Positions 47,616 to 58,682 of a stretch of DNA of 64,000 nt are shown piece by piece. How positions within the stretch are numbered: the stretch's first letter is position 1; each line of letters opens with the position of its first letter. The stretch is from Guillardia theta CCMP2712 (Eukaryota; Protista; Cryptophyta): positions 155,867-219,866 of the forward strand of contig NW_005434633.1 of assembly GCF_000315625.1 (NCBI RefSeq), in the 5' to 3' direction. The position numbers were made by a program, and so were the translations under genes. The notes beneath the pieces were generated by a model that worked only from the letters and a program-made list of their open reading frames with translations, made no database searches and was not told the origin of the DNA.

Positions 47616-48226
47616 TAAGGGTATTGTTGATAGATGTGATATGTATAGTTATACATGGTAATGGGATTTAACTGACAGTTTCTAGATGGGTAGGGTACAG
47701 GGTAGGGTAGGCCTGGAGGGGGGGTGGTAGAGACTGCCGATACGGGTGTGAAGTTTTATCGGGGGACGATCCTGTCTGTTGTATCCTTACGTAAGCCCAT
47801 GTGATCTTGACTTGTGTTGCTTCTTCTGATCTCAACATCTCTCTTTGCTCTCTACCCTATGCTCGTGCTCACCTACCTGCGTACGTTCTCCTCTTTTCTC
47901 AATCCTGTTCATTATCTCCAACCATTCCCTCTACTCTCAGTCAAGATTCATCACTCTGTGTCTTCCTCCTCCCCCCGTACTTTTTGAAGAGGAAATTAAA
48001 AAAGTCAAGGCAAGGAAGGGGACGTAAACAAGATGAGCGCAGGAGAAGCAGCAGATCAATTTCCTAGAAGCTCTTGAACAAGAGTAAGGCTAGTGTAGAG
48101 GTAGTGTAGAGGTCTCTCTGCTGATCCAGGATGCAGGTCTGAGGCTCGGAGGGGAGACGATTGGCGTGAGCGAAGGCTGTGAGGAGAGGAGATTCCTGTC
48201 CTTGCGCTGGAGGCGGCACAGGAAGG

Positions 48227-51200
48227 ATGAGGTGCTTCCGGAGCTCGTCTTCATCTCGAGTGACACCGGAGAACAAGCAAGCAGAGGTGGACCTAGAGAA
48301 AGCAAGGGAGAAGATCTCAGAACTGGTCCAGAGGCTGGCTAGCTTGTCGAGGGAGAATCAAGAGCTCAAGGCGAAGACGGATGATACTGGCACTGGCTCC
48401 TACTCCTCACTTGAGCAAAGGTCGGAGCAGGCGACTGGGAAGATCTCAGAGCTGGAAGGAAAGCTCAAGATCTTGGTGGAAGACAATAACAAACTTCAAG
48501 CGGCACTCCAGCTGGCAACTGTGAAGGACCCGCCTGCCAGCCTTCACGAGACCCAGCAGAGCATGTCGATCATGTCAAGCCCGAGGCCTCAGCCACAGCC
48601 TACAACAACAGATCGTGTCACATCTTGGACACTCCCTCAAGACATTCGATCTACCCTCCGTGAGTACTACCAAGCCTCTCAAGAGCCCCAGGGATCCAAG
48701 CTCCTCCGCAAAGACCTCCTCGTATATCTCGGCGTGGACTTATCATCCGTCAAGCTTCAGTCAAGCCCTGACAAGCTCTCGTACGAGAACTTCGAGGTCA
48801 GAGTCGCTCGAGAGTGGGAGCTTGTTCGCAAGGCCAGCAGCCTCGCCGACATGGACATCCTGCGAGTGCTGGCGGAGTGCATCCCCGGCGGGAGCGCGGA
48901 GAGTCCTCTTGGGGGGCTACAGGGGATGACGGAGGCAGCAATATCGGCTCTATGCGAGACCACGATAGCAGGGAGGCTGGCAGCAGCGCTGAGGAGGCCG
49001 GAGAAGGCTCCAGGACGAGAGGTCGGAGACTATCCAACCTCGCACAACAGCAAGTACGCAGAGACGCGAGAAGCCATGTACGGGAAGATCGAGGAGTACT
49101 ACGGGGGGCTGATGGACCGGATCGGGCTGCCTCAGACAGACCTGATGAAGGCGATCGAGGAGGAGCACTGCAAGGGCGAGGACGCGGAGGAGGCGTTTGT
49201 GACGAGCAACTACGGGATCACGACGACATCGAAGGAGGAGTGGCTCAACGTTAGAGACTCGGAGAGGAGGCAGAGGCTGTCGGACGGGACGCGGATCATC
49301 CGAGGGATCGAGGAGCTGATGGAGCACGAGACGGCGATCAAGGCAGGGCTACAGGAGGCGGAGCTGATCGCGCTGCAGCTCTACACAGGTAAGGGAGATA
49401 GAGAGCGAGAAGGAAGCTTGTAGGAGAGAGGGAATGAGAGGATATGCGGTATATGACGAGAGGCTTTGGTCTGACAGGGCCGATGTACCAAAAGTACAAC
49501 TCTGTACTTCGAGCTCCCAAAGAGCTCCTCCAAGACCCCAAGAAGATCCCCAACAAGTACACGACCACCATCCACTGCATTGTCAGCGGCGTCGTCAAGC
49601 TGTCTCGTCACACGCCTCTGCCGGAAGACCGGCGGGTGTGGAGGGGGCTGAGCGGGCTGAGGCTGCCGGAGAGCTTTCTGAGCGAGAACGAGCTCGGCGT
49701 GTCTGGAGGAGTTGAGTACGGGCTGCTGAGTACCACGACAGACGTCGGGACGGCGATCCAGTACTCCGGGGCGGGGGCAGAGCCGATCGTGTTCGAGATG
49801 AGCTGCGGGGCGATCGACCGGGGGGCGAGCTTGGCGTTTGTGTCTCAGTACCCGGGGGAGGGGGAGATCTTGTATCCGCCGCTGTCGTACTTGGAGGTGG
49901 TGAAGACGCCGCGGTACAGGGAGGTAGAGGGGAGGCGGGTGAAGGTGCTGGAGCTGAAGATCAACGCGAACACGATGAGCTCGACGATCGAGGACTTTGT
50001 AGGGAAGAGGAAGCAGCTGTACGTAGGGCTGATGGAGAACATCGCGAGGGAGGTCGAGCGAGACTTGAAGGGGTGGGAAGGGAGGATCCAGGAGCGGCTC
50101 AGGACAGCAACAGGCGATGTTTTCAACGGGTACTGTCAGTCTCTTGTGGAATCGATCATGGAGGAGTGCTGGGGTCTGGTGGAGGCGAGCAAGGGGAGGG
50201 AGGCGGAGTGGTACAACAAGGAGTCAAGGTACAAGGAGGCGATCGAGCTTTCGAACCGAGTGAAGGACATGGCGATGAACAAGCTCAGACACTGGATCGA
50301 AGACACTCAGGGAGACAGGAAGTGTGAAGATATTGCGTACGAGCCGATGCAGTCAGTGTACTGGAAGACGATGGCGGGTCTGATGTACTCGATCAGCTCG
50401 CGGACTTCAGCAGGTGATAACGGCAGAGCCGAGCTGAGCAAGAGACTATGCCGAATGTACGGCTTGTCGATCTCAAGGTCGGACATGGAGGGGGAGCCGC
50501 CGACAGTTAGGGCGATGGTACGAGGACAGGGGGAGCTGATCGGGCTGCTCAAGGCGGCCGGAGGCGACATGAACGAGCGGATGGAGGACGGGAGGACAGG
50601 GCTGCATGTAGCAGGGATGCTGGGGAGGGCGGGGAGCGTGAGGGAGCTGATGGAGGCAGGAGCAGAGGTAGGAGCGAAGGACAAGGAAGGGAAGACTCTG
50701 GTGCACTGGGCGACGGCGTATGGGCATGTGGAGGTACTGAAGACGGTGGAGCAACAATGCGGGAAAGAGGCTCTGAGCACCTTGATGTTGGAGAAGACCG
50801 ATGATGGCACGACATGCGCGCATAATGCGAGTATGGGAGGGCACTTCAAGGTGCTACGGTATGTTGCAGAGACATGTGGGGAGGAGCTGCTGAGGGAGAA
50901 GGACAAGGACGGCTGGACATGCGCGCACTGGGCGAGTGAGGGAGGGCACTTGGATGTGCTGCAGTATCTTGAGGAGAGGTGCGGGAAGGAGTTGCTGAGG
51001 GAGAAGAACAAGGACGGTAAGACTTGCGCGCAAACGGCAAGTGCTGGAGGGCACTTGGAGGTAGTGCGGTATGTTGCAGAGACATGCGGGGAGGAGCTGC
51101 TGAGGGAAAAAGACGATTTCGACAGGACATGCGCGCACTGGGCGAGTGCGGGAGGGCACTTGGAGGTAGTGCGGTATCTTGTAGATACATGCGGGGAGGA

Positions 51201-51507
51201 GCTGCTGAGGGAGAAGGACAAGGACGGCTGGACATGCGCGCACTGGGCGAGTGAGGGAGGGCACTTGGAGGTAGTGCGGTATCTTGAGGAGAGGTGCGGG
51301 GAGGAGCTGCTGAGGGAGAAGACACAGATCAGCAATACATGCGCGCACTATGCGAGTATGGGAGGGCACTTGGAGGTGCTACAGTATGTTGCAGAGAAGT
51401 GCGGGGAGGAGCTGCTGAGGGAGAGGAACGAGGACGGTGAGACTTGCTTGACTTTGGCTCGTACGTCAGAGGTTGAGGATTACCTTAGAGGTTTAGGTAT
51501 CGACTAA
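48227..51507 (+). CDS. Coiled-coil + NAD:arginine-type (R-S-E clade) mono-ADP-ribosyltransferase + C-terminal ankyrin array; single intron 49389-49477
   Basis: The intron joins LIALQLYT-G-PMYQKYNSVLR in phase. ART motifs VWRGL (R), LLSTT (S) and SQYPGEGEILYPP (E-x-E). About 10 ankyrin repeats follow. Confidence 0.88.
50776..51460 (+). repeat. 105-bp tandem repeat encoding 35-aa ankyrin units
   Basis: gaggagctgctgaggga (or a close variant) recurs at 50881, 50986, 51091, 51196, 51301 and 51406, an exact 105-bp period. Confidence 0.95.
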
Positions 51508-52902
51508 GACTGAGCCAACAAGCTGCAGCCATAGAAATCGCTCTCATACCTATATTAAAAGCCTTTGTAAGCGACCTGACTTCCCTCACTGCTGGTAGGA
51601 CGAGGAGCAGAAGCTTGTGAGCAGCGAGAGCTCGCACGAGGCGAGAGTGCTCGAGCAGCAAGGAGCAGTAGCGTTAGTCCTTCCTCTAGGCTTACGAGGA
51701 TGAGCCTCTTGAGGCAGAAGGGGCTGCTGTCTGCTGATGGAGTCTAGCTCGCTTGTCTGGCATCGCCCGTACAGTAGAGGTGGCAGTGCACTTCACCTCT
51801 GAGCGATGCAGCGGAGGTGCCGTGAGCACTCGCTGTCAGCGTTAGCTCGCTATTGCTCGCTTCTCCTCTACAGCGTCAGGCCAGCTGAGGATGCAGCTAG
51901 CATGACGCTTGCAACAACCGTGATGAGCCCAGAGAGAGAGGGGATGAAGACGTCGCTCCTACAGGGGAGGAGGCAGATCTACGACGGTAGGAGGGAAGCG
52001 GAGGGGAGGGGAGGAGAAAGTGAGAGAAGCTTGAGCGAGGTTGGCTCTTGCCATCCCTAGCTGGAGGTCAGAGGTGAGCGGCGGAGGGTGTAGGTCATCA
52101 TGGCTTGTGCGAAACGGAAACTTATAGCAGATTCAGTCGTGTGACGCACCAGCAACGCTGATGGAGGAGGGAGAGAAGGATGAGAAGCCTTAGGGAGGGT
52201 GGAGGAGGGAGAGGAGGATGGGGAGGTGAAGAACAAGTATGCTCTTGCCCAGTCAAGACGTGGGGGGAACCTGTGGAACCCATGAAGCCTGCACGGACCT
52301 TGACAGGTGATGACGAATGTTTGAAAACGAGCAAGGGAGGAAGACGAGGGTTGTATGAGCGGTACGATAGAGCAGGAGCACTGCGGGTACAGTTGTACAG
52401 CAGCAGAAGCAAGACAGAAATCGTTGCACGAGAAAGAAAGCAAGAGAGAAGTTTTTTGATCTTGTAACAAGTGCTTGTATAACAAGGAGAGAGTACAACG
52501 AAGATTGCACTCTGGTGGTCATACTGTAGTACTTGGAGCACCGTGGCACCGTGCGCCTCGGGCCGGGCCCAGGCCCGGCGGTCTGTTGGGTTCGACAGGG
52601 CCGGCCGCGCTAGTCGGCGGCGCAGCGGCGGGCCGCCGCAGTTTCAGCCGAGCCGCTGAGCGGCCGGCGGCGAAGAAGCCACCTCAATGCTGCTCTCCCA
52701 ACTTCAAGCGTCCAGACATGAGAGGACCTTAGCGGCGCCGCAAGACGGCTAGGGAGGCCTACTCTTCGTCAAACGTAGTACATTGCCGCCTCCGACGGCG
52801 CAACACGTAAGGGTCGTCTTGGGTTTACATTTAACAGGAGAGGACTGGCACGGCTGGCATGCGATTGTTAGAAAGCATCCTCCATACCGTCACCCACTCA
52901 CA

Positions 52903-55900
52903 TCAGATGCGCAGAAACTCGACGAGGAATTCAGGGTAGGTCTGCCGTCGGTCGTAGACTATGAACTCGCGGTACATGAGCAGGCGGGCTCCGGGGTGCG
53001 TCGCGGTCGTGACTCCGATGACCGAGTCAAACACCCGATGGTCTGCCATCATCGGCGGTCGCCTCGCGTTGTTCATCGGCTGCACAGCCTCATACGGCGT
53101 GCCCAGCAGGGCTCGAACTAGGAACATGTGGCAGAGACCGTTGCGGTCGGGCCTGCAGTACTCGTCGCTCTTGCTCGAGTTCTCCGCCAAGTATATCCCA
53201 GCTCCGAACAAGCCGCTGAGACTGCAGACGCGCTCGTCTAGCCCCGCAGTCAAGATGGCATCGACGATATCTGGCTTGGTGCCATGGAAGAGGAACACCT
53301 CGTTGCTCGCTCTGTCGCACGCGAGCTCCTTCTTCATCCAGTCTCTCCACGTGGCCACTTTGCTCTTGGGATGGCGTTTGCCCAGCTGCATCGGTAGAGA
53401 GGCTGTTGCTTGTCGCTGGAGGGCATAGGCGGACCAGAAGTTCAAGTTTTCAACCCGGAAGACTCGCTCAACCCTGTATCCCGTGTGAGTCAGCCCTCTG
53501 TTGTTATTCCCTCTCCCGATGTACTGGGGTATGCATGTCGACGACATCAGCTCTTGTATCCTGTCCTTCCATGCTGCCGTAACGTCCACCTTGATCAAGG
53601 CGTGCAGCGGGTTCTGCTTGCTCTCCTGCCAGTACAAGGGCGGGTTGAGCACAGCTCGATCCTGTGCGAGCAGCTGCTTCTCTTTCTCAAGGTCTTTCTG
53701 CTTCCGTTCAAGCTCGGCTTGTTGCTTGCTCGCAGCCGTTATCTTGCTCTGCAGGTCATGCTGCTGCTTCTTGAGACGACCGTCTTGCTTGAGCAGCTCT
53801 TGTTTCTGCTCCTGTAGCTGCTGCTTCTTAGCTACGGCTTGGAACTCAAGCTGCTGGCCTTTAGAGGCTAGCTCCTTCTGCTGTTCTAAGATCTTCCTTT
53901 GCTCAAGCTGCACGTGTTCTCTCTGCTGCCTGATGTTCTTCTCTTGATCGGCTAGCAGCTGTTGCTGATGGACGAGCAAGGCCATCTCCCGATCCTGCGC
54001 CTCCTGCATCTTCATCCGCTCCTTGGCGAGGTGCTCGCGCTCTACGATCATGGAGTGACAGAAGTAAGCGTGGGCGAGGGCTTCGACTGACGAGAGTCTT
54101 GCACGAGGATCAGCTTCGAGAAGCTTCTCGATAAGGCCTCTCGCGTCGCCAGCTAGACCGGCGAGCTGCGTTGCATCATCAAGCGAGCCTCCTCTAACTG
54201 ATCCAGTCAGCAGCTCGAGCATCACGATGCCGTATGAGAACATGTCTGACTTGTGCGAGGCTCTTCGCTTCGTGCTCGAAGGGTTCACGAGCTCCGGGGC
54301 CATGTACCTCAACGTCCCGACCACATGAGTCCCTGACGTCACAGTAGCAACCAGGTCTTGAGCGCGATCCTTCTGCTCCTTGGATACGTCAAAGTCTGCG
54401 ATCTTGGGCTCAGCGTCGGGTAGCTGGGAGGACATAAGGATGTTGGAGGGCTTGATGTCGCAGTGGATGATTCGGTTCTGACGGAGGTGCTCTATCCCCA
54501 GCAGCACCTGCAGCAGTACCCTGTGCTTGTGCTGCTCGCTCGGTTGCACGCTCAGAAACCATTCCCACAGGGTCCCTCCCTCAAGAAAAGGCATTTTGAG
54601 GTAGCCCTTGATCAAGCCGTGCGCCTCCTGCTGCTCTTCCACGAAAGCTCCGTACATGTTGATGAGGAAGGGATGTTCAAGCCGACGTAGGATGCTGACC
54701 TCCTGCAAGAAACGTCTCCTGTGTTTGTCATCTTCAGACGACAGCCAGTACTCCTTGATCACAAACTCGTCTCCTCCCTGCCTGACGCGAATCACGTTGT
54801 GTCGAGCACCCGCATGTCCAGCTCGTGACAAGTACTTGACGACGTCATACATATCAAGCTTGTCGTACAGGCTGACGTCTAGTTCTTGCACCAAGTTCCT
54901 CTTGTATTCTGGGTAGTGATCGACTAGTGACCAGAGCCTGTTGTCAAGCATCTCGAGCTCCTTGGTAGAGGCCACAAGCTTCTTCTTGATCTCATCGATC
55001 TCCTCTTCGAGCTTCTCGCATGAAAGTTTCTTCCGTGTGTTCCATTCTACCTTGTGCTTGCAGGTCATGAGCTCATCTTCTAGTGCCTCCATCGCATTTT
55101 TCAGCTCATCTCGCTTGGCGAACAAGAGTCCGGGTTCCTCTAGGCCCTTCAGCTGCTCCGTGCTTGCCTGCACGACCTTCATGTTCGACTGCTGCCCCAT
55201 GGTGAACAACGTATCCCTTATCCAGATAACGGCAGTTTGTAAGCCCTCACGCAGGTGTGTGAAAGGAAAAGAGTCAAGGAGGGACTGGTCGCTCAGAATC
55301 ATCTCTTCCGACACAAAAGCTTCTTCGAGGGCCACGTGCACCTTCGGCAGAGCCTCTTGTAGCCCCTTGGCTTCTTCTCTGCTCCTCTCAGTTCCGCTCC
55401 CATCCAGCAGAGTCGTCAGCAGACGCAGCCCATCAGCGTAAGTACGAGCAATCTCAAGTCTCTCCTCCCTCGCGCGCATCAGCATTCGGTTGACACCTTC
55501 AACCCACTGCAACATCCTCGTCTCCACGTCCTCAAGCTGCTCTCGAAGCGACGCAGAGCTCGTAGTAGCAGCTGACTGTCCTCGCTCCTCGGAGCTTGAG
55601 GGCGTCGGATCGCCCTGACAGCACCTCAGGTAAGTCTCCAGCTTGTCTGTCAGCTGCTCGAGAGTCGTCTGATGACCCTCAAGGCTCTTCTGACTGCCAT
55701 GAAGCAGAGCAAAGAGACGATCCCACGCCGCCACCAGTGACTGTCGGACCTCGTCCCGTCTAGCGATGCCTCCTCTCAAGTCTTCGCCTGCTCCAACTCC
55801 AGCAGCTCCTTCGCTTGCCAGCTTTGCCACCTCTTCTTGCGCAGCTGAAAGATCATCTTGTAACGAACGCACCTCAGCCCAAGATTGCTGGACGCGACCG

Positions 55901-56310
55901 TAAGTGAGCTGACCAGCCCCATCAAGCACAGACAGACACGTCAGCAGAAGCTCGTGCCCCTCCTGTGCTGCCGCCAGCTCGGAGCTGAACATTCCCTCAG
56001 CCCAAGCAGACAGATCGAGCTTTGATGATGCAGCAGATGTCTTGTTGGCATCGTAACGCAACGCAAGCTTGACAACTGAGCGAAGAGAAGTAGACCGATC
56101 CAACGCGTCTTGACGCTCTTGTGCTGCTCTGGTCTCACGTTCCTGCTCCTCCTTGGCCCTTCGCTCCTGCTCCTTCTTGGCCCTTCGCTCCTGCTCGTCC
56201 TTGGCCCTTCGCTCCTGCTCCTCTTTCGCCTTTTGCTCTGATTCTCGTCTTAATTCATGCTGCAGCTGCTCTTGTGCCCTCAGTTTGCAGTGAGCGCAGC
56301 CGAGCTGAAC
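52903..56310 (-). CDS. Coiled-coil + Ser/Thr protein kinase + coiled-coil + tankyrase-like PARP catalytic domain fusion. This is a 3.4-kb terminal exon; small 5' exon(s) probably lie upstream.
   Basis: Kinase: FVIKE, FLQEVSILRRLEHP, IIHCDIKPSNIL, KIADFD, GTLRYMAPE, SDMFSYG. PARP: NEVFLFHGT, GLDERVCSLSGLFGAGIYLAENSSKSDEY, YREFIVYDRRQTYPEFLV. Acceptor ttcgttcag at ~56305, preceded by a candidate exon CNKANGWTQYEQ|gt. Confidence 0.9.
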   Translation of the reverse strand, partial: VQLGCAHCKLRAQEQLQHELRRESEQKAKEEQERRAKDEQERRAKKEQERRAKEEQERETRAAQERQDALDRSTSLRSVVKLALRYDANKTSAASSKLDLSAWAEGMFSSELAAAQEGHELLLTCLSVLDGAGQLTYGRVQQSWAEVRSLQDDLSAAQEEVAKLASEGAAGVGAGEDLRGGIARRDEVRQSLVAAWDRLFALLHGSQKSLEGHQTTLEQLTDKLETYLRCCQGDPTPSSSEERGQSAATTSSASLREQLEDVETRMLQWVEGVNRMLMRAREERLEIARTYADGLRLLTTLLDGSGTERSREEAKGLQEALPKVHVALEEAFVSEEMILSDQSLLDSFPFTHLREGLQTAVIWIRDTLFTMGQQSNMKVVQASTEQLKGLEEPGLLFAKRDELKNAMEALEDELMTCKHKVEWNTRKKLSCEKLEEEIDEIKKKLVASTKELEMLDNRLWSLVDHYPEYKRNLVQELDVSLYDKLDMYDVVKYLSRAGHAGARHNVIRVRQGGDEFVIKEYWLSSEDDKHRRRFLQEVSILRRLEHPFLINMYGAFVEEQQEAHGLIKGYLKMPFLEGGTLWEWFLSVQPSEQHKHRVLLQVLLGIEHLRQNRIIHCDIKPSNILMSSQLPDAEPKIADFDVSKEQKDRAQDLVATVTSGTHVVGTLRYMAPELVNPSSTKRRASHKSDMFSYGIVMLELLTGSVRGGSLDDATQLAGLAGDARGLIEKLLEADPRARLSSVEALAHAYFCHSMIVEREHLAKERMKMQEAQDREMALLVHQQQLLADQEKNIRQQREHVQLEQRKILEQQKELASKGQQLEFQAVAKKQQLQEQKQELLKQDGRLKKQQHDLQSKITAASKQQAELERKQKDLEKEKQLLAQDRAVLNPPLYWQESKQNPLHALIKVDVTAAWKDRIQELMSSTCIPQYIGRGNNNRGLTHTGYRVERVFRVENLNFWSAYALQRQATASLPMQLGKRHPKSKVATWRDWMKKELACDRASNEVFLFHGTKPDIVDAILTAGLDERVCSLSGLFGAGIYLAENSSKSDEYCRPDRNGLCHMFLVRALLGTPYEAVQPMNNARRPPMMADHRVFDSVIGVTTATHPGARLLMYREFIVYDRRQTYPEFLVEFLRI

Positions 56311-56640
56311 GAAGAAACCCGTCAATGATGGTCAGCCTGTCATGAAAATCAAGTCCAACAAATAAACGTGCACCTGTTCATATTGGGTCCATCCATTAGC
56401 CTTGTTGCACTTGATTACAAAAAGTCAAAAGATTGACAAGTTCCACGACTGAAATGAAACAAACTCACATTCTTGAGAATCGAGAGGATAAATATCCAAT
56501 AACACAAGTCAAATTCAGAAGATGAATGGAAAACTTGAATCTTACACAGCACTGTCTCCAATTAAACAGAGGCATATAAAAGTCAGAAGAAAACCAAAAT
56601 CAAAACTGTATTTTTGAGACAACCCTTTTCTGCAATTCAC

Positions 56641-57385
56641 CTCTCCTCCTCTCCTTCCCCCTCGCCGCCTCGTCTCTCCGATACTCACCGACTACGTACA
56701 GCCCCGTGCCCCCAGCCCGTCCGCCCGTCCAGCCGCCCATCCGTACATACACAAAGACTACATGTCAGCTCGTTGAGTCTGCCTCCCCGTCCCCGTCCCC
56801 GTCCCCGTCCTGATGCCGGTCCCTGCTCCCTGCCTTTCCTTCCCTCCTCCTCCTGTCCTCCCTCCCTGTCTCAGTCGCTGTTGCTTCCGTCCCTCTTGCT
56901 CGAGCATCTCCTCTCCTCCTCTCCTTCCCCCCTGCCGCCTCGCCCCTCCGATACTTACCCACTACGTACAGCCCCGTGCCCCCAGCCCGTCCGCCCGTCC
57001 AGCCGCCCATCCGTACATACACAAAGACTACATGTCAGCTCGCTGAGTCTGCCTCCCCGTCCCCGTCCCCGTCCCCGTCCTGTCCCCGTCCCCGTCCCCG
57101 TCCCCGTCCCTGTCCCCGTCCTGATGCCGGTCCCTGCTCCCTGCCTTTCCTTCCCTCCTCCTCCTGTCCTCCCTCCCTGTCTCAGTCGCTGTTGCTTCCG
57201 TCCCTCTTGCTCGAGCATCTCCTCTCCTCCTCTCCTTCCCCCTCGCCGCCTCGTATCTCCGATACTCACCCCCTATACAGTCCCGTGCCCCAAGCCCGTC
57301 CGCCCGTCCAGCCGCCCATCCGTACATACACAAAGACTACATGTCAGCTCGTTGAGTCTGCCTCCCCGTCCCCGTCCCCGTCTTG
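56641..57385. repeat. Tandem repeat, ~270-310 bp unit x 2.5, with internal (CCCCGT)n minisatellite
   Basis: Units start at 56641, 56911 and 57222 and share ccgcccgtccagccgcccatccgtacatacacaaagactacatgtcagctcg. Confidence 0.93.
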
Positions 57386-58682
57386 ATTCAGATCTCTTTT
57401 TTCTTCCTTTCTTGTTTTTCTCTGTTGCTCGTCATGTTTTCCCACCTTCTGTTGGTTTGGAGTTTTCAAAGTTTTTGCCAAGGATATACATGTTGGAAAT
57501 GTCAAGGGGAATTCATCGAATAGATGCTTCATTTACGCATTTTGTCGTGTCGGCGGTGTCCGCTTCAATGACGATCTGAGGAGCTCACAGTCAGAAGAAC
57601 GAACAGATGTCGAGCATGGAGCTTTAGCTCCTTCACTTTCCTGGCAAGCATGGCAGCGGGACATCCTCGCCATGTGAACATGAAGTTGCGATTGTTTTTA
57701 TACCACAAGAGTCTGCCCCAGAGAAATAGATAGACACAAGAAAAGGCACAAAATGTCAGATAAGAATCCTTTCAAGAAGTAGTACCAGCTGCCTCCAAGC
57801 TGGTCTACCATCATTCTGCAATGCCTGAAAATTCTCTTGAACCCTCTTACAGGAGGAACTAGTTATTACTGAACTAGTTACTGAAGCTCTAACTTCTTCC
57901 CATCCAGGCAAGACAACAACTGAGTTGCAAGTTGCCGCACTGCGTTCATGTCACCGTCTTGCTGCGATGTTCGTGGGTATTGCCATGTTCGTCATTTTCG
58001 TCCACCGGCGTAGATCGTCATCAATCGGAATAAGGGGTCCAACGGGTTTCGAAGGCAAAACCGGGACTTGGTGGCAGATACGATGGATACGATGCAAAGG
58101 GCTGCTTCAGAACAGACTAAATGTACGAGTCAAGAACAGTAGTAATGGGGAATTGTATTTCAACAAACTGACATTTGATGCTGGTTTTGATTATACAAGC
58201 GATGCGCTGCTCCTTGCGCGAGAATGGGGATGACAGCAAGCTTTCATCATCATGCTTGCCTGCCTTTACAAAGCGACCTTATACGCAACCACCTCACGAC
58301 ATGAAGGACGTGTCTCTGAGTGGGACCCTCGGGTCATTCAAAAGGACAAGGTTAGACAAAGAGTAGATGTTGTGTCATGTTCGACGACGAGATGTTGGGT
58401 TTAGTGCAAGTATATCTTAGATTAGGCTCGAAAACTTTCACACCACGATGATGCTGTGTTTGTTCAGTTTTCGCTCCACTGCCTGTTATGCATATGTTCC
58501 ATATGAAATTTAACCATCACCGTGAGTGTTGTTCGGATCGGTCAGAAGTTGTGCAAGATTCATCAGTGCTTTCAACACCACTACAATGCCGAAGAAGAAA
58601 CGAGGGTTCGCAAGAAATGTAAATGAACTTCTTAACACAGTTTGCAAGATTAAATTGAAAGAATACTTTATTAGGAATACAT

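Follow-up and report, generated by a model that had tools for sequence, protein, structure and literature searches.

A 64,000-nucleotide stretch of the genome of the cryptophyte Guillardia theta CCMP2712 (contig NW_005434633.1, positions 155,867 to 219,866; hereafter the window, to which all nucleotide coordinates refer) carries on its minus strand a real, transcribed nuclear gene that encodes a protein kinase and a poly(ADP-ribose) polymerase (PARP) domain in a single protein of about 1170 residues or longer. The identity of this protein and its domain architecture are almost certain. The explanation that best accounts for the data overall, to which we assign a probability of about 0.7, is that it is a multidomain kinase-PARP enzyme belonging to an unstudied protist family. 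The original prediction, made from the sequence alone, had already proposed a kinase and a PARP domain on one chain, and a single frame, Pfam matches to both domains and an RNA contig that spans them all support this claim. The protein is composed of the following parts, from its N-terminal to its C-terminal side:

56141-56238, minus strand: EQERRAK charged repeat, 24 nucleotides x 4 (Tandem Repeats Finder, translation).
54871-56094, minus strand: N-terminal all-helical bundle, residues 78-485 (AlphaFold2 of this part alone, predicted local distance difference test (pLDDT) 85, predicted template modelling score (pTM) 0.70).
54070-54846, minus strand: Ser/Thr protein kinase domain, residues 494-752 (Pfam PF00069, family alignments, Foldseek, phmmer).
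53647-54069, minus strand: helical linker rich in Q, E, K and L, residues 753-893, with two long helices (AlphaFold2 secondary structure, composition).
52906-53649, minus strand: PARP catalytic domain with its N-terminal extension, residues 893-1140 (Pfam PF00644, tankyrase alignment, conservation among 24 members).

Open-frame analysis identified the gene as an uninterrupted frame of 1140 codons on the minus strand (window 52903-56325), which ends with a TGA stop codon at 52903-52905. We aligned four RNA runs to positions 52400-56636 (4237 letters). Three of them are contig sets flagged only 'RNA?', but since they lack a 48-nucleotide segment with GT..AG ends at 52854-52901, they derive from spliced RNA. 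Record 1 of contig set X1 is 3699 nucleotides long, matches 52561-52853 and 52902-56307 with 0 mismatches, and carries the 3' untranslated region (UTR), the PARP domain, the linker, the kinase and the N-terminal region on one spliced contig. Separate mRNAs for the kinase and the PARP domain, which the original prediction had named as evidence against itself, were looked for, and the two domains were found joined in this contig. Exon junctions were read by translation, and similarity searches used the main exon rather than a joined spliced model. The main exon and the 3' part of the transcript are organized as follows:

52902-56304, minus strand: main exon, 3.4 kb, nearly the whole coding sequence (open frame and RNA contig X1 record 1, with splice joints at both ends).
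52854-52901, minus strand: intron in the 3' UTR, 48 nucleotides, GT..AG, starting one base past the stop codon (joint 52853>52902 in X1, X3 and X6).
52443-52853, minus strand: exon of the 3' UTR, minimum extent (X6 record 8, X1 record 1).

The paralog L004 (G000:C29:208512-214820) has a frame of 1115 codons and shares a 90% cluster with the NCBI models GUITHDRAFT_152279 (162 residues) and GUITHDRAFT_70371 (117 residues). Both models are fragments of the L004 frame, which is spanned by the transcriptome open reading frame (ORF) P0001 (1005 residues). The fragmentary models therefore hide the architecture, and the family is easily missed by surveys based on annotated proteomes. The same split annotation, together with the fact that contigs alone cannot prove a single transcript, could be taken to indicate that the fusion is an artifact of gene modelling, namely two adjacent genes or an assembly join. 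This explanation is largely refuted and retains hardly any probability: there is no stop in the 1140 codons, the continuous frame recurs at at least seven other loci, one spliced RNA contig spans both domains, and the linker between them is under purifying selection. Furthermore, the independent transcriptomes of Hanusia and Nolandella each give kinase and PARP as a single ORF, as do the ORFs of the paralog (P0001) and of Hanusia (P0003).

The kinase domain is recognized by Pfam PF00069 (Pkinase) at residues 511-755 with an E-value of 3.8e-40 (138 bits, versus a cut-off of 31.7), and its set of catalytic residues is complete, with K524 in beta-3, E542 in alpha-C, H621-C-D623, N628, the Mg-binding D644 and APE676-678. 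The kinase predicted at ~54060-54850 is thus well founded. In an alignment of 24 family members, K524, E542, D623, N628, D644 and APE either never vary or occur in at least 90% of the sequences, and D694 and R743 are conserved too. The arginine of the HRD motif in the catalytic loop is replaced by cysteine (HCD) throughout the family, which makes this a non-RD kinase. Two canonical motifs are missing. The DFG motif reads DFD (D644-F-D646), again family-wide, and the Gly-rich loop does not follow GxGxxG but reads AGHAGARHNV, with a single glycine at a canonical position, lying in a conserved G-x-R-H-x-V. The nearest solved kinases share 20-26% identity with this domain and are CAMK-type enzymes and PDB 9gmp, annotated as 'MAP kinase kinase-like protein'. 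By sequence the latter matches best (E-value 6e-23), and by structure CaMKII, CDPK and Chk2 do. The fold and the catalytic residues are those of 9gmp and of CAMK-group or similar Ser/Thr kinases, such as these three and DAPK, but the Guillardia kinase differs from the CAMK group in its reduced Gly-rich loop, in DFD and HCD, and in having no calmodulin-binding or EF-hand part. The next-best kinase matches in the G. theta genome, on contigs C20 and C23, are either kinase-only or composed of adjacent kinase and WD40 frames, and represent another family. A word search with residues 290-770, dominated by generic kinases, returned no HECT or RBR enzyme joined to this kinase module.

Judging from these residues, the domain is probably a divergent, active Ser/Thr kinase. 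The degenerate Gly-rich loop and the replacement of DFG by DFD are also what would be seen in a pseudokinase that regulates or scaffolds the PARP domain, in which case the protein would have only one enzymatic output. Within the family, the locus L011 (G000:C21:506781-511463) is, on the evidence of its motifs, a natural pseudokinase-PARP: its kinase has lost K, D and DFD (HCLINPHN; NFS for DFD) and lies on a very long branch of the kinase tree, yet its PARP domain keeps an intact H-Y-E triad. The PARP part can therefore persist without kinase chemistry. For the protein studied here, a pseudokinase is nevertheless quite improbable, because K524, E542, D623, N628, D644, APE and R743 are kept from cryptophytes to Naegleria, DFD is conserved rather than decayed, and the ratio of nonsynonymous to synonymous substitution rates (dN/dS) of the kinase region between paralogs is 0.16-0.28, as expected under purifying selection.

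The PARP domain is recognized by Pfam PF00644 at residues 941-1137 with an E-value of 2.4e-20 (73.4 bits, versus a cut-off of 26.7; model positions 13-197 of 199). The motifs FHGT, GIYLAENSSKS and YREFIVY, on which the prediction of a full H-Y-E triad was based, were all found, and hold H1014, Y1045 and E1120, respectively, each opposite the corresponding triad residue of tankyrase-1 in the alignment. The codons of the triad are:

53284-53286, minus strand: codon of H1014, the triad His.
53191-53193, minus strand: codon of Y1045, the triad Tyr.
52966-52968, minus strand: codon of E1120, the triad Glu.

Among 24 relatives, H1014 and Y1045 are invariant and E1120 is present in at least 90%, so that the complete triad is a property of the family. 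K1052, Y1056, Y1118-x-E1120 and P896/W899 are also conserved across the family in this region. When we searched solved structures with the single sequence, tankyrase-1 (E-value 5.8e-15, 58.7 bits) was closely followed by PARP15 (2.3e-14, 56.8 bits). A profile of 15 family PARP domains gave 113 bits for tankyrase-2 (E-value 1.4e-31), 99 for PARP15, 96 for PARP12, 77 for PARP14 and 62 for PARP1.

The description of the domain as tankyrase-like is therefore correct insofar as tankyrase is the best-scoring solved catalytic domain. The two also share H-Y-E, a motif of the GIYFAENSSKS type, a C-terminal YPE(F/Y)L motif and the lack of a PARP1-type helical regulatory domain. Beyond this core the likeness ends. 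The zinc-binding insertion of tankyrase (~14 residues) is opposed by a gap whether the single sequence or the profile is aligned, no ankyrin and no SAM match was found in the Pfam scan of the 1140-residue protein, and where tankyrase 1/2 (TNKS, PARP5a/b) has substrate-binding ankyrins, the Guillardia protein has a kinase and a long helical region. The closest PARP domains in the databases belong to other kinase-PARP proteins, followed by protist PARPs in which a WWE, helicase or FN3 domain is present. Tankyrases proper (Ank+SAM+PARP; Ank and SAM are listed for P0134 and P0135) share 35-36% identity with the PARP domain. In a maximum-likelihood tree holding no other PARP clades, such as PARP1 or PARP14 outgroups, the kinase-PARP domains and the tankyrase branch are split at 100/100 support, with a few kinase-less PARPs interspersed among the former. 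As far as sequence comparison can tell, the likeness is limited to the catalytic core and the kinase-PARP protein is not a tankyrase.

The proximity of the tankyrase, PARP15 and PARP12 scores leads to the question of the reaction product. The PARP domain could be a mono-ADP-ribosyltransferase and not a polymerase, which would leave the fusion unaffected. We rate this as a serious alternative, not far short of an even chance. Besides the scores, it is favored by the absence of a helical regulatory domain as in PARP1 and of a zinc loop as in tankyrase, and by a PxxW in the N-terminal extension of the domain, which presumably resembles that of the PARP7/10-15 group. In length, the catalytic domain is similar to those of PARP15, PARP12 and PARP14. 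On the other side, E1120 and its Y-x-E context are conserved across the family, whereas mono-transferases of the PARP15/PARP12/PARP14 type lack the catalytic Glu and read H-Y-L/I, and most mono-transferases of the PARP7/10-15 group have replaced it. The partners differ as well, being macro, WWE and CCCH domains in those proteins and a kinase in this one. An argument against a mono-transferase besides E1120 is the presence of a PARG catalytic domain (145 bits) in the G. theta genome. Since macrodomains are encoded as well, G. theta could plausibly turn over poly(ADP-ribose). The triad together with Y1118-x-E1120 would permit polymer synthesis, and a poly, oligo or mono product are each possible.

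The regions outside the two catalytic domains are predicted to be helical. An AlphaFold2 monomer model built on the family alignment (mean pLDDT 78) places helices at residues 11-480, the kinase at 494-750, two further helical segments at 753-819 and 825-893, and the PARP fold at 912-1140. The linker (753-893) has no Pfam match. The original prediction had described it as a Gln/Glu/Lys coiled coil between kinase and PARP. It is rich in Q, E, K and L, has a length of ~140 residues and is modelled, as a monomer, as two long helices. A crude heptad-hydrophobicity score gave no separation of the linker from globular regions and is therefore uninformative on its coiled-coil nature. At the other end of the protein, the predicted EQERRAK repeat is present. 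Its interpretation as a coiled coil is less satisfactory: nearly all of its residues are charged, a crude count, which separates regions poorly, gives few hydrophobic heptad positions, and the stretch looks more like a charged single helix.

The N-terminal helical bundle contains a conserved motif, F353-P354, which the N-terminal alignment numbers F276-P277. It corresponds to no Pfam family and has no significant match in PDB or ESM Atlas, as assessed with Foldseek, VIA-align and searches by shape and features. We rejected generic matches to helical hairpins and bundles, the best of which reached a Z of 10.5, below the quoted noise level for helical models. We also rejected matches to ClyA-type toxins as non-specific (template modelling score 0.23-0.27, root-mean-square deviation > 17 Å). 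A profile comparison with hhalign aligned the bundle to the Naegleria and Nolandella members with 85% probability and an E-value of 6e-6, over the C-terminal two thirds and including the invariant F-P. The helical region is thus probably homologous to its equivalent in these species.

The same architecture is found in other protists. Outside Guillardia, the closest relatives are in the cryptophyte Hanusia phi, with 52-59% identity over the C-terminal 661 residues, and Naegleria and other members share 30-38% identity across kinase and PARP. Pfam detects the same domain order in H. phi, Naegleria fowleri, N. lovaniensis, Nolandella sp. and metagenomic eukaryotes. N. fowleri FDP41_002250, N. lovaniensis C9374_005202 and H. 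phi A0A6T7TA30 resemble the Guillardia protein in domain order, DFD, HCD and H-Y-E. They differ at the N-terminus: some of the protist proteins add LRR, WD40, SNase or RRM modules, in place of which the cryptophyte copies begin with a Cys-rich part and carry the EQERRAK repeat. The trees of the kinase and of the PARP domain share several groups, namely L007 with Hanusia P0005, L002 with L003, L005 and L009, and the Naegleria trio near P0010. These matching groups fit a single ancient fusion whose two domains have stayed together ever since.

Members of the family in the databases bear automatic names, such as 'Poly [ADP-ribose] polymerase', and our literature search found no description of a kinase-PARP fusion. 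The original prediction would have been weakened by a common and already characterized family. The architecture does recur in protists, but we found no published characterization of it. A survey of eukaryotic PARPs from 2010 does not mention it, leaves two Naegleria PARPs with H-Y-E unplaced and counts G. theta among the genomes without an identifiable PARP (PMC2964712), an entry that presumably refers to the nucleomorph genome. The architecture is also unmentioned in a PARP survey from 2014 (PMC4245714). Belonging to an unstudied protist family, the protein is a new variant in both the PARP and the kinase superfamily. Giant-virus contigs of IMG/VR (L017-L023) match its PARP domain at 24-41% identity. 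The three contigs that we inspected showed no kinase fusion and encode short stand-alone PARP ORFs of 160, 183 and 461 residues, and on this basis we rejected a viral origin.

Within G. theta the gene belongs to a multi-copy family. A search of the assembly (87.1 Mb, 669 contigs) returned at least eight full-length copies, each a single open frame of 945-1175 codons, on contigs C41, C234, C221, C29, C239, C195, C112 and C164, in addition to a divergent copy on C21 and several truncated copies and fragments. The studied protein shares 41-54% identity with six paralogs over nearly the whole length. Between paralogs, dN/dS ranges from 0.14 to 0.55 across four regions (N-terminal part, kinase, linker and PARP domain), each of which is under purifying selection. 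The N-terminal region and the linker are the fastest-evolving parts of the family. When L002 (G000:C234) is compared with L003 (G000:C221), the PARP region has a synonymous divergence of 0.22 and the N-terminal region one of 0.71, which suggests gene conversion of the 3' part.

The gene that converges on the kinase-PARP gene (49444-51507, plus strand) has VWRG, STT and EGEILYPP motifs at its start, followed by a long ankyrin array. Its match to PF03496 lies below the cut-off (E-value 0.0065), and the motifs point to a probable ADP-ribosyltransferase (ART) domain of the R-S-E type at the beginning of the protein. The genome contains at least 78 matches to the N-terminal 319 residues of this neighbor, many of them 80-88% identical, which define an expanded ART-ankyrin family. 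Some of these matches lie on contigs that also bear kinase-PARP copies (C239, C194, C28 and C41). A frame of 414 codons at 48179-49423 (plus strand) shows weak matches of coiled-coil type only and ends 20 nucleotides before the ART-ankyrin frame, of whose gene it may be the upstream part. The remaining genes of the window are ordinary ones, encoding a TTL, a Na+/H+ antiporter and an L1-family protein.

Several of these features recall systems of biological conflict. Variable N-terminal sensors could trigger a kinase-PARP effector in innate immunity or cell death, for example through NAD+ depletion or the marking of targets upon infection. This would be consistent with the truncated copies and fragments of the multi-copy family, with the fast evolution of the N-terminal and linker regions, with the LRR, WD40, SNase or RRM modules at the N-termini of relatives, with the non-RD kinase (HCD) and with an adjoining gene from a greatly expanded ART-ankyrin family. 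We consider it rather unlikely on balance, given that dN/dS never exceeds 1 between paralogs, that the rest of the window is ordinary in content and that no kinase-PARP fusion occurs in the giant-virus contigs inspected.

The 5' end of the kinase-PARP gene is more complex than originally predicted. Position 56310 had been given as its limit, but this is a splice acceptor and not the start of the gene, since RNA shows that coding continues upstream of the main exon, which starts at 56304, through an intron into small exons:

56305-56373, minus strand: intron, 69 nucleotides, GT..AG (joint 56304>56374, 17x in X1 and 212x in X6).
56374-56409, minus strand: coding exon, 36 nucleotides, which reads CNKANGWTQYEQ (RNA contigs; Cys-rich N-terminus).
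56469-56471, minus strand: one-codon exon AAT (AG/AAT/GTGAGT; RNA contigs read ...TGCTGT AAT before the 36-nucleotide exon; site scan).
56546-56551, minus strand: two-codon exon TGCTGT (AG/TGCTGT/GTAAGA; contig loose ends and site scan; X6 record 14 begins at 56546).
56637-57418, minus strand: three tandem units of ~270-310 bp, each composed of an intron and a one-codon exon (direct repeats, AG/NNN/GT sites).
56689-56691, minus strand: one-codon exon TCG (site scan and RNA contigs of X1 and X6).
56959-56961, minus strand: one-codon exon TGG (site scan and RNA contigs of X1 and X6).
57270-57272, minus strand: predicted one-codon exon GGG (site only).

RNA contigs of X1 and X6 join TGG-TCG-TGCTGT-AAT in this order, and each small exon has canonical AG/GT flanks. 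In the same contigs, four extra codons (GTG CTG CTG TCG) precede TGG, and X6 shows the context '...gtacgtag/CTG'. Both are missing from the window, so the repeat array may have collapsed in the assembly, or the difference may be one of strain. The in-frame translation of the 36-nucleotide exon matches the Cys-rich N-terminus of the Hanusia transcript ORF P0003, and a corresponding exon with its short intron is also found upstream of the paralogs L002, L003 and L004. Unspliced copies of the 69-nucleotide intron outnumber spliced ones, with pieces over 56278-56403 seen 34x in X1 and 573x in X6. When retained, the intron places an in-frame TGA and a short upstream ORF, MDGPNMNRCTFICWT, before the main frame, and such transcripts would need translation to start at Met112, which is the first in-frame ATG of the main frame, or later.

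A number of observations weigh against the interpretation of the gene product as a multidomain kinase-PARP enzyme. No start codon was located upstream of the main frame by site scan or in RNA contigs, of whose loose ends 30 letters each were read, nor was an ATG exon placed, and the prevalence of intron retention means that some of the mRNA may lack coding for the full N-terminus. In the kinase, the one-glycine loop and DFD suggest that ATP handling is perhaps unusual. In the PARP domain, H-Y-E is necessary for polymer formation but not sufficient, as PARP3 and PARP4 carry it and make no polymer. The linker helices (753-819 and 825-893) are modelled with modest confidence and as a monomer only (pLDDT ~55-72), with a low-confidence break at 820-824. 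Finally, the sole RNA-seq run with raw reads, X20, contributes 35 reads, nearly all of which lie in the 3' flank and almost none on the ORF. They may come from a 3'-biased library, from another strain or from the UTR of the convergent neighbor.

The X20 reads are confined to 52400-52825. Their first mate is always on the minus strand, most of them fit partially, and a G>A difference appears in them at 52710.

In order, the protein consists of a Cys-rich N-terminus encoded in tiny exons, a charged EQERRAK helix, a helical domain of ~400 residues, a non-RD kinase, a linker of ~140 residues and the PARP domain. We find it reasonably probable, from the conservation of the catalytic residues, that both domains are active, so that one protein would perform both phosphorylation and ADP-ribosylation. 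The helical region, or the LRR, WD40, SNase or RRM modules of relatives, may serve as the input or targeting part, and the conserved kinase-linker-PARP cassette would be the output. A direct functional coupling of the two activities is a more tentative proposal, with odds clearly below even. In the simplest form of such coupling, auto-modification would allow one activity to gate the other; alternatively, both activities may mark the same target. The original prediction had proposed that oligomerization through a coiled coil would couple them. In animals, PARPs and kinases are well known to influence each other, to our knowledge always as separate proteins. More broadly, and with considerable doubt, the family might represent an ancient undescribed eukaryotic 'dual-writer' cassette of helical region, non-RD kinase, helical linker and H-Y-E PARP, to which different protists would add their own sensors (LRR, WD40, SNase, RRM or Cys-rich), and in which phosphorylation and (poly)ADP-ribosylation would be coupled as the outputs of a receptor-like protein, perhaps in defense or cell death.

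With two intact-looking catalytic centers on one polypeptide, which is conserved among distant protists and has multiplied in a cryptophyte, the protein offers a natural system for studying how phosphorylation and ADP-ribosylation are coupled. The kinase-PARP family would also add to the PARPs a lineage that two previous surveys do not mention (PMC2964712, PMC4245714).

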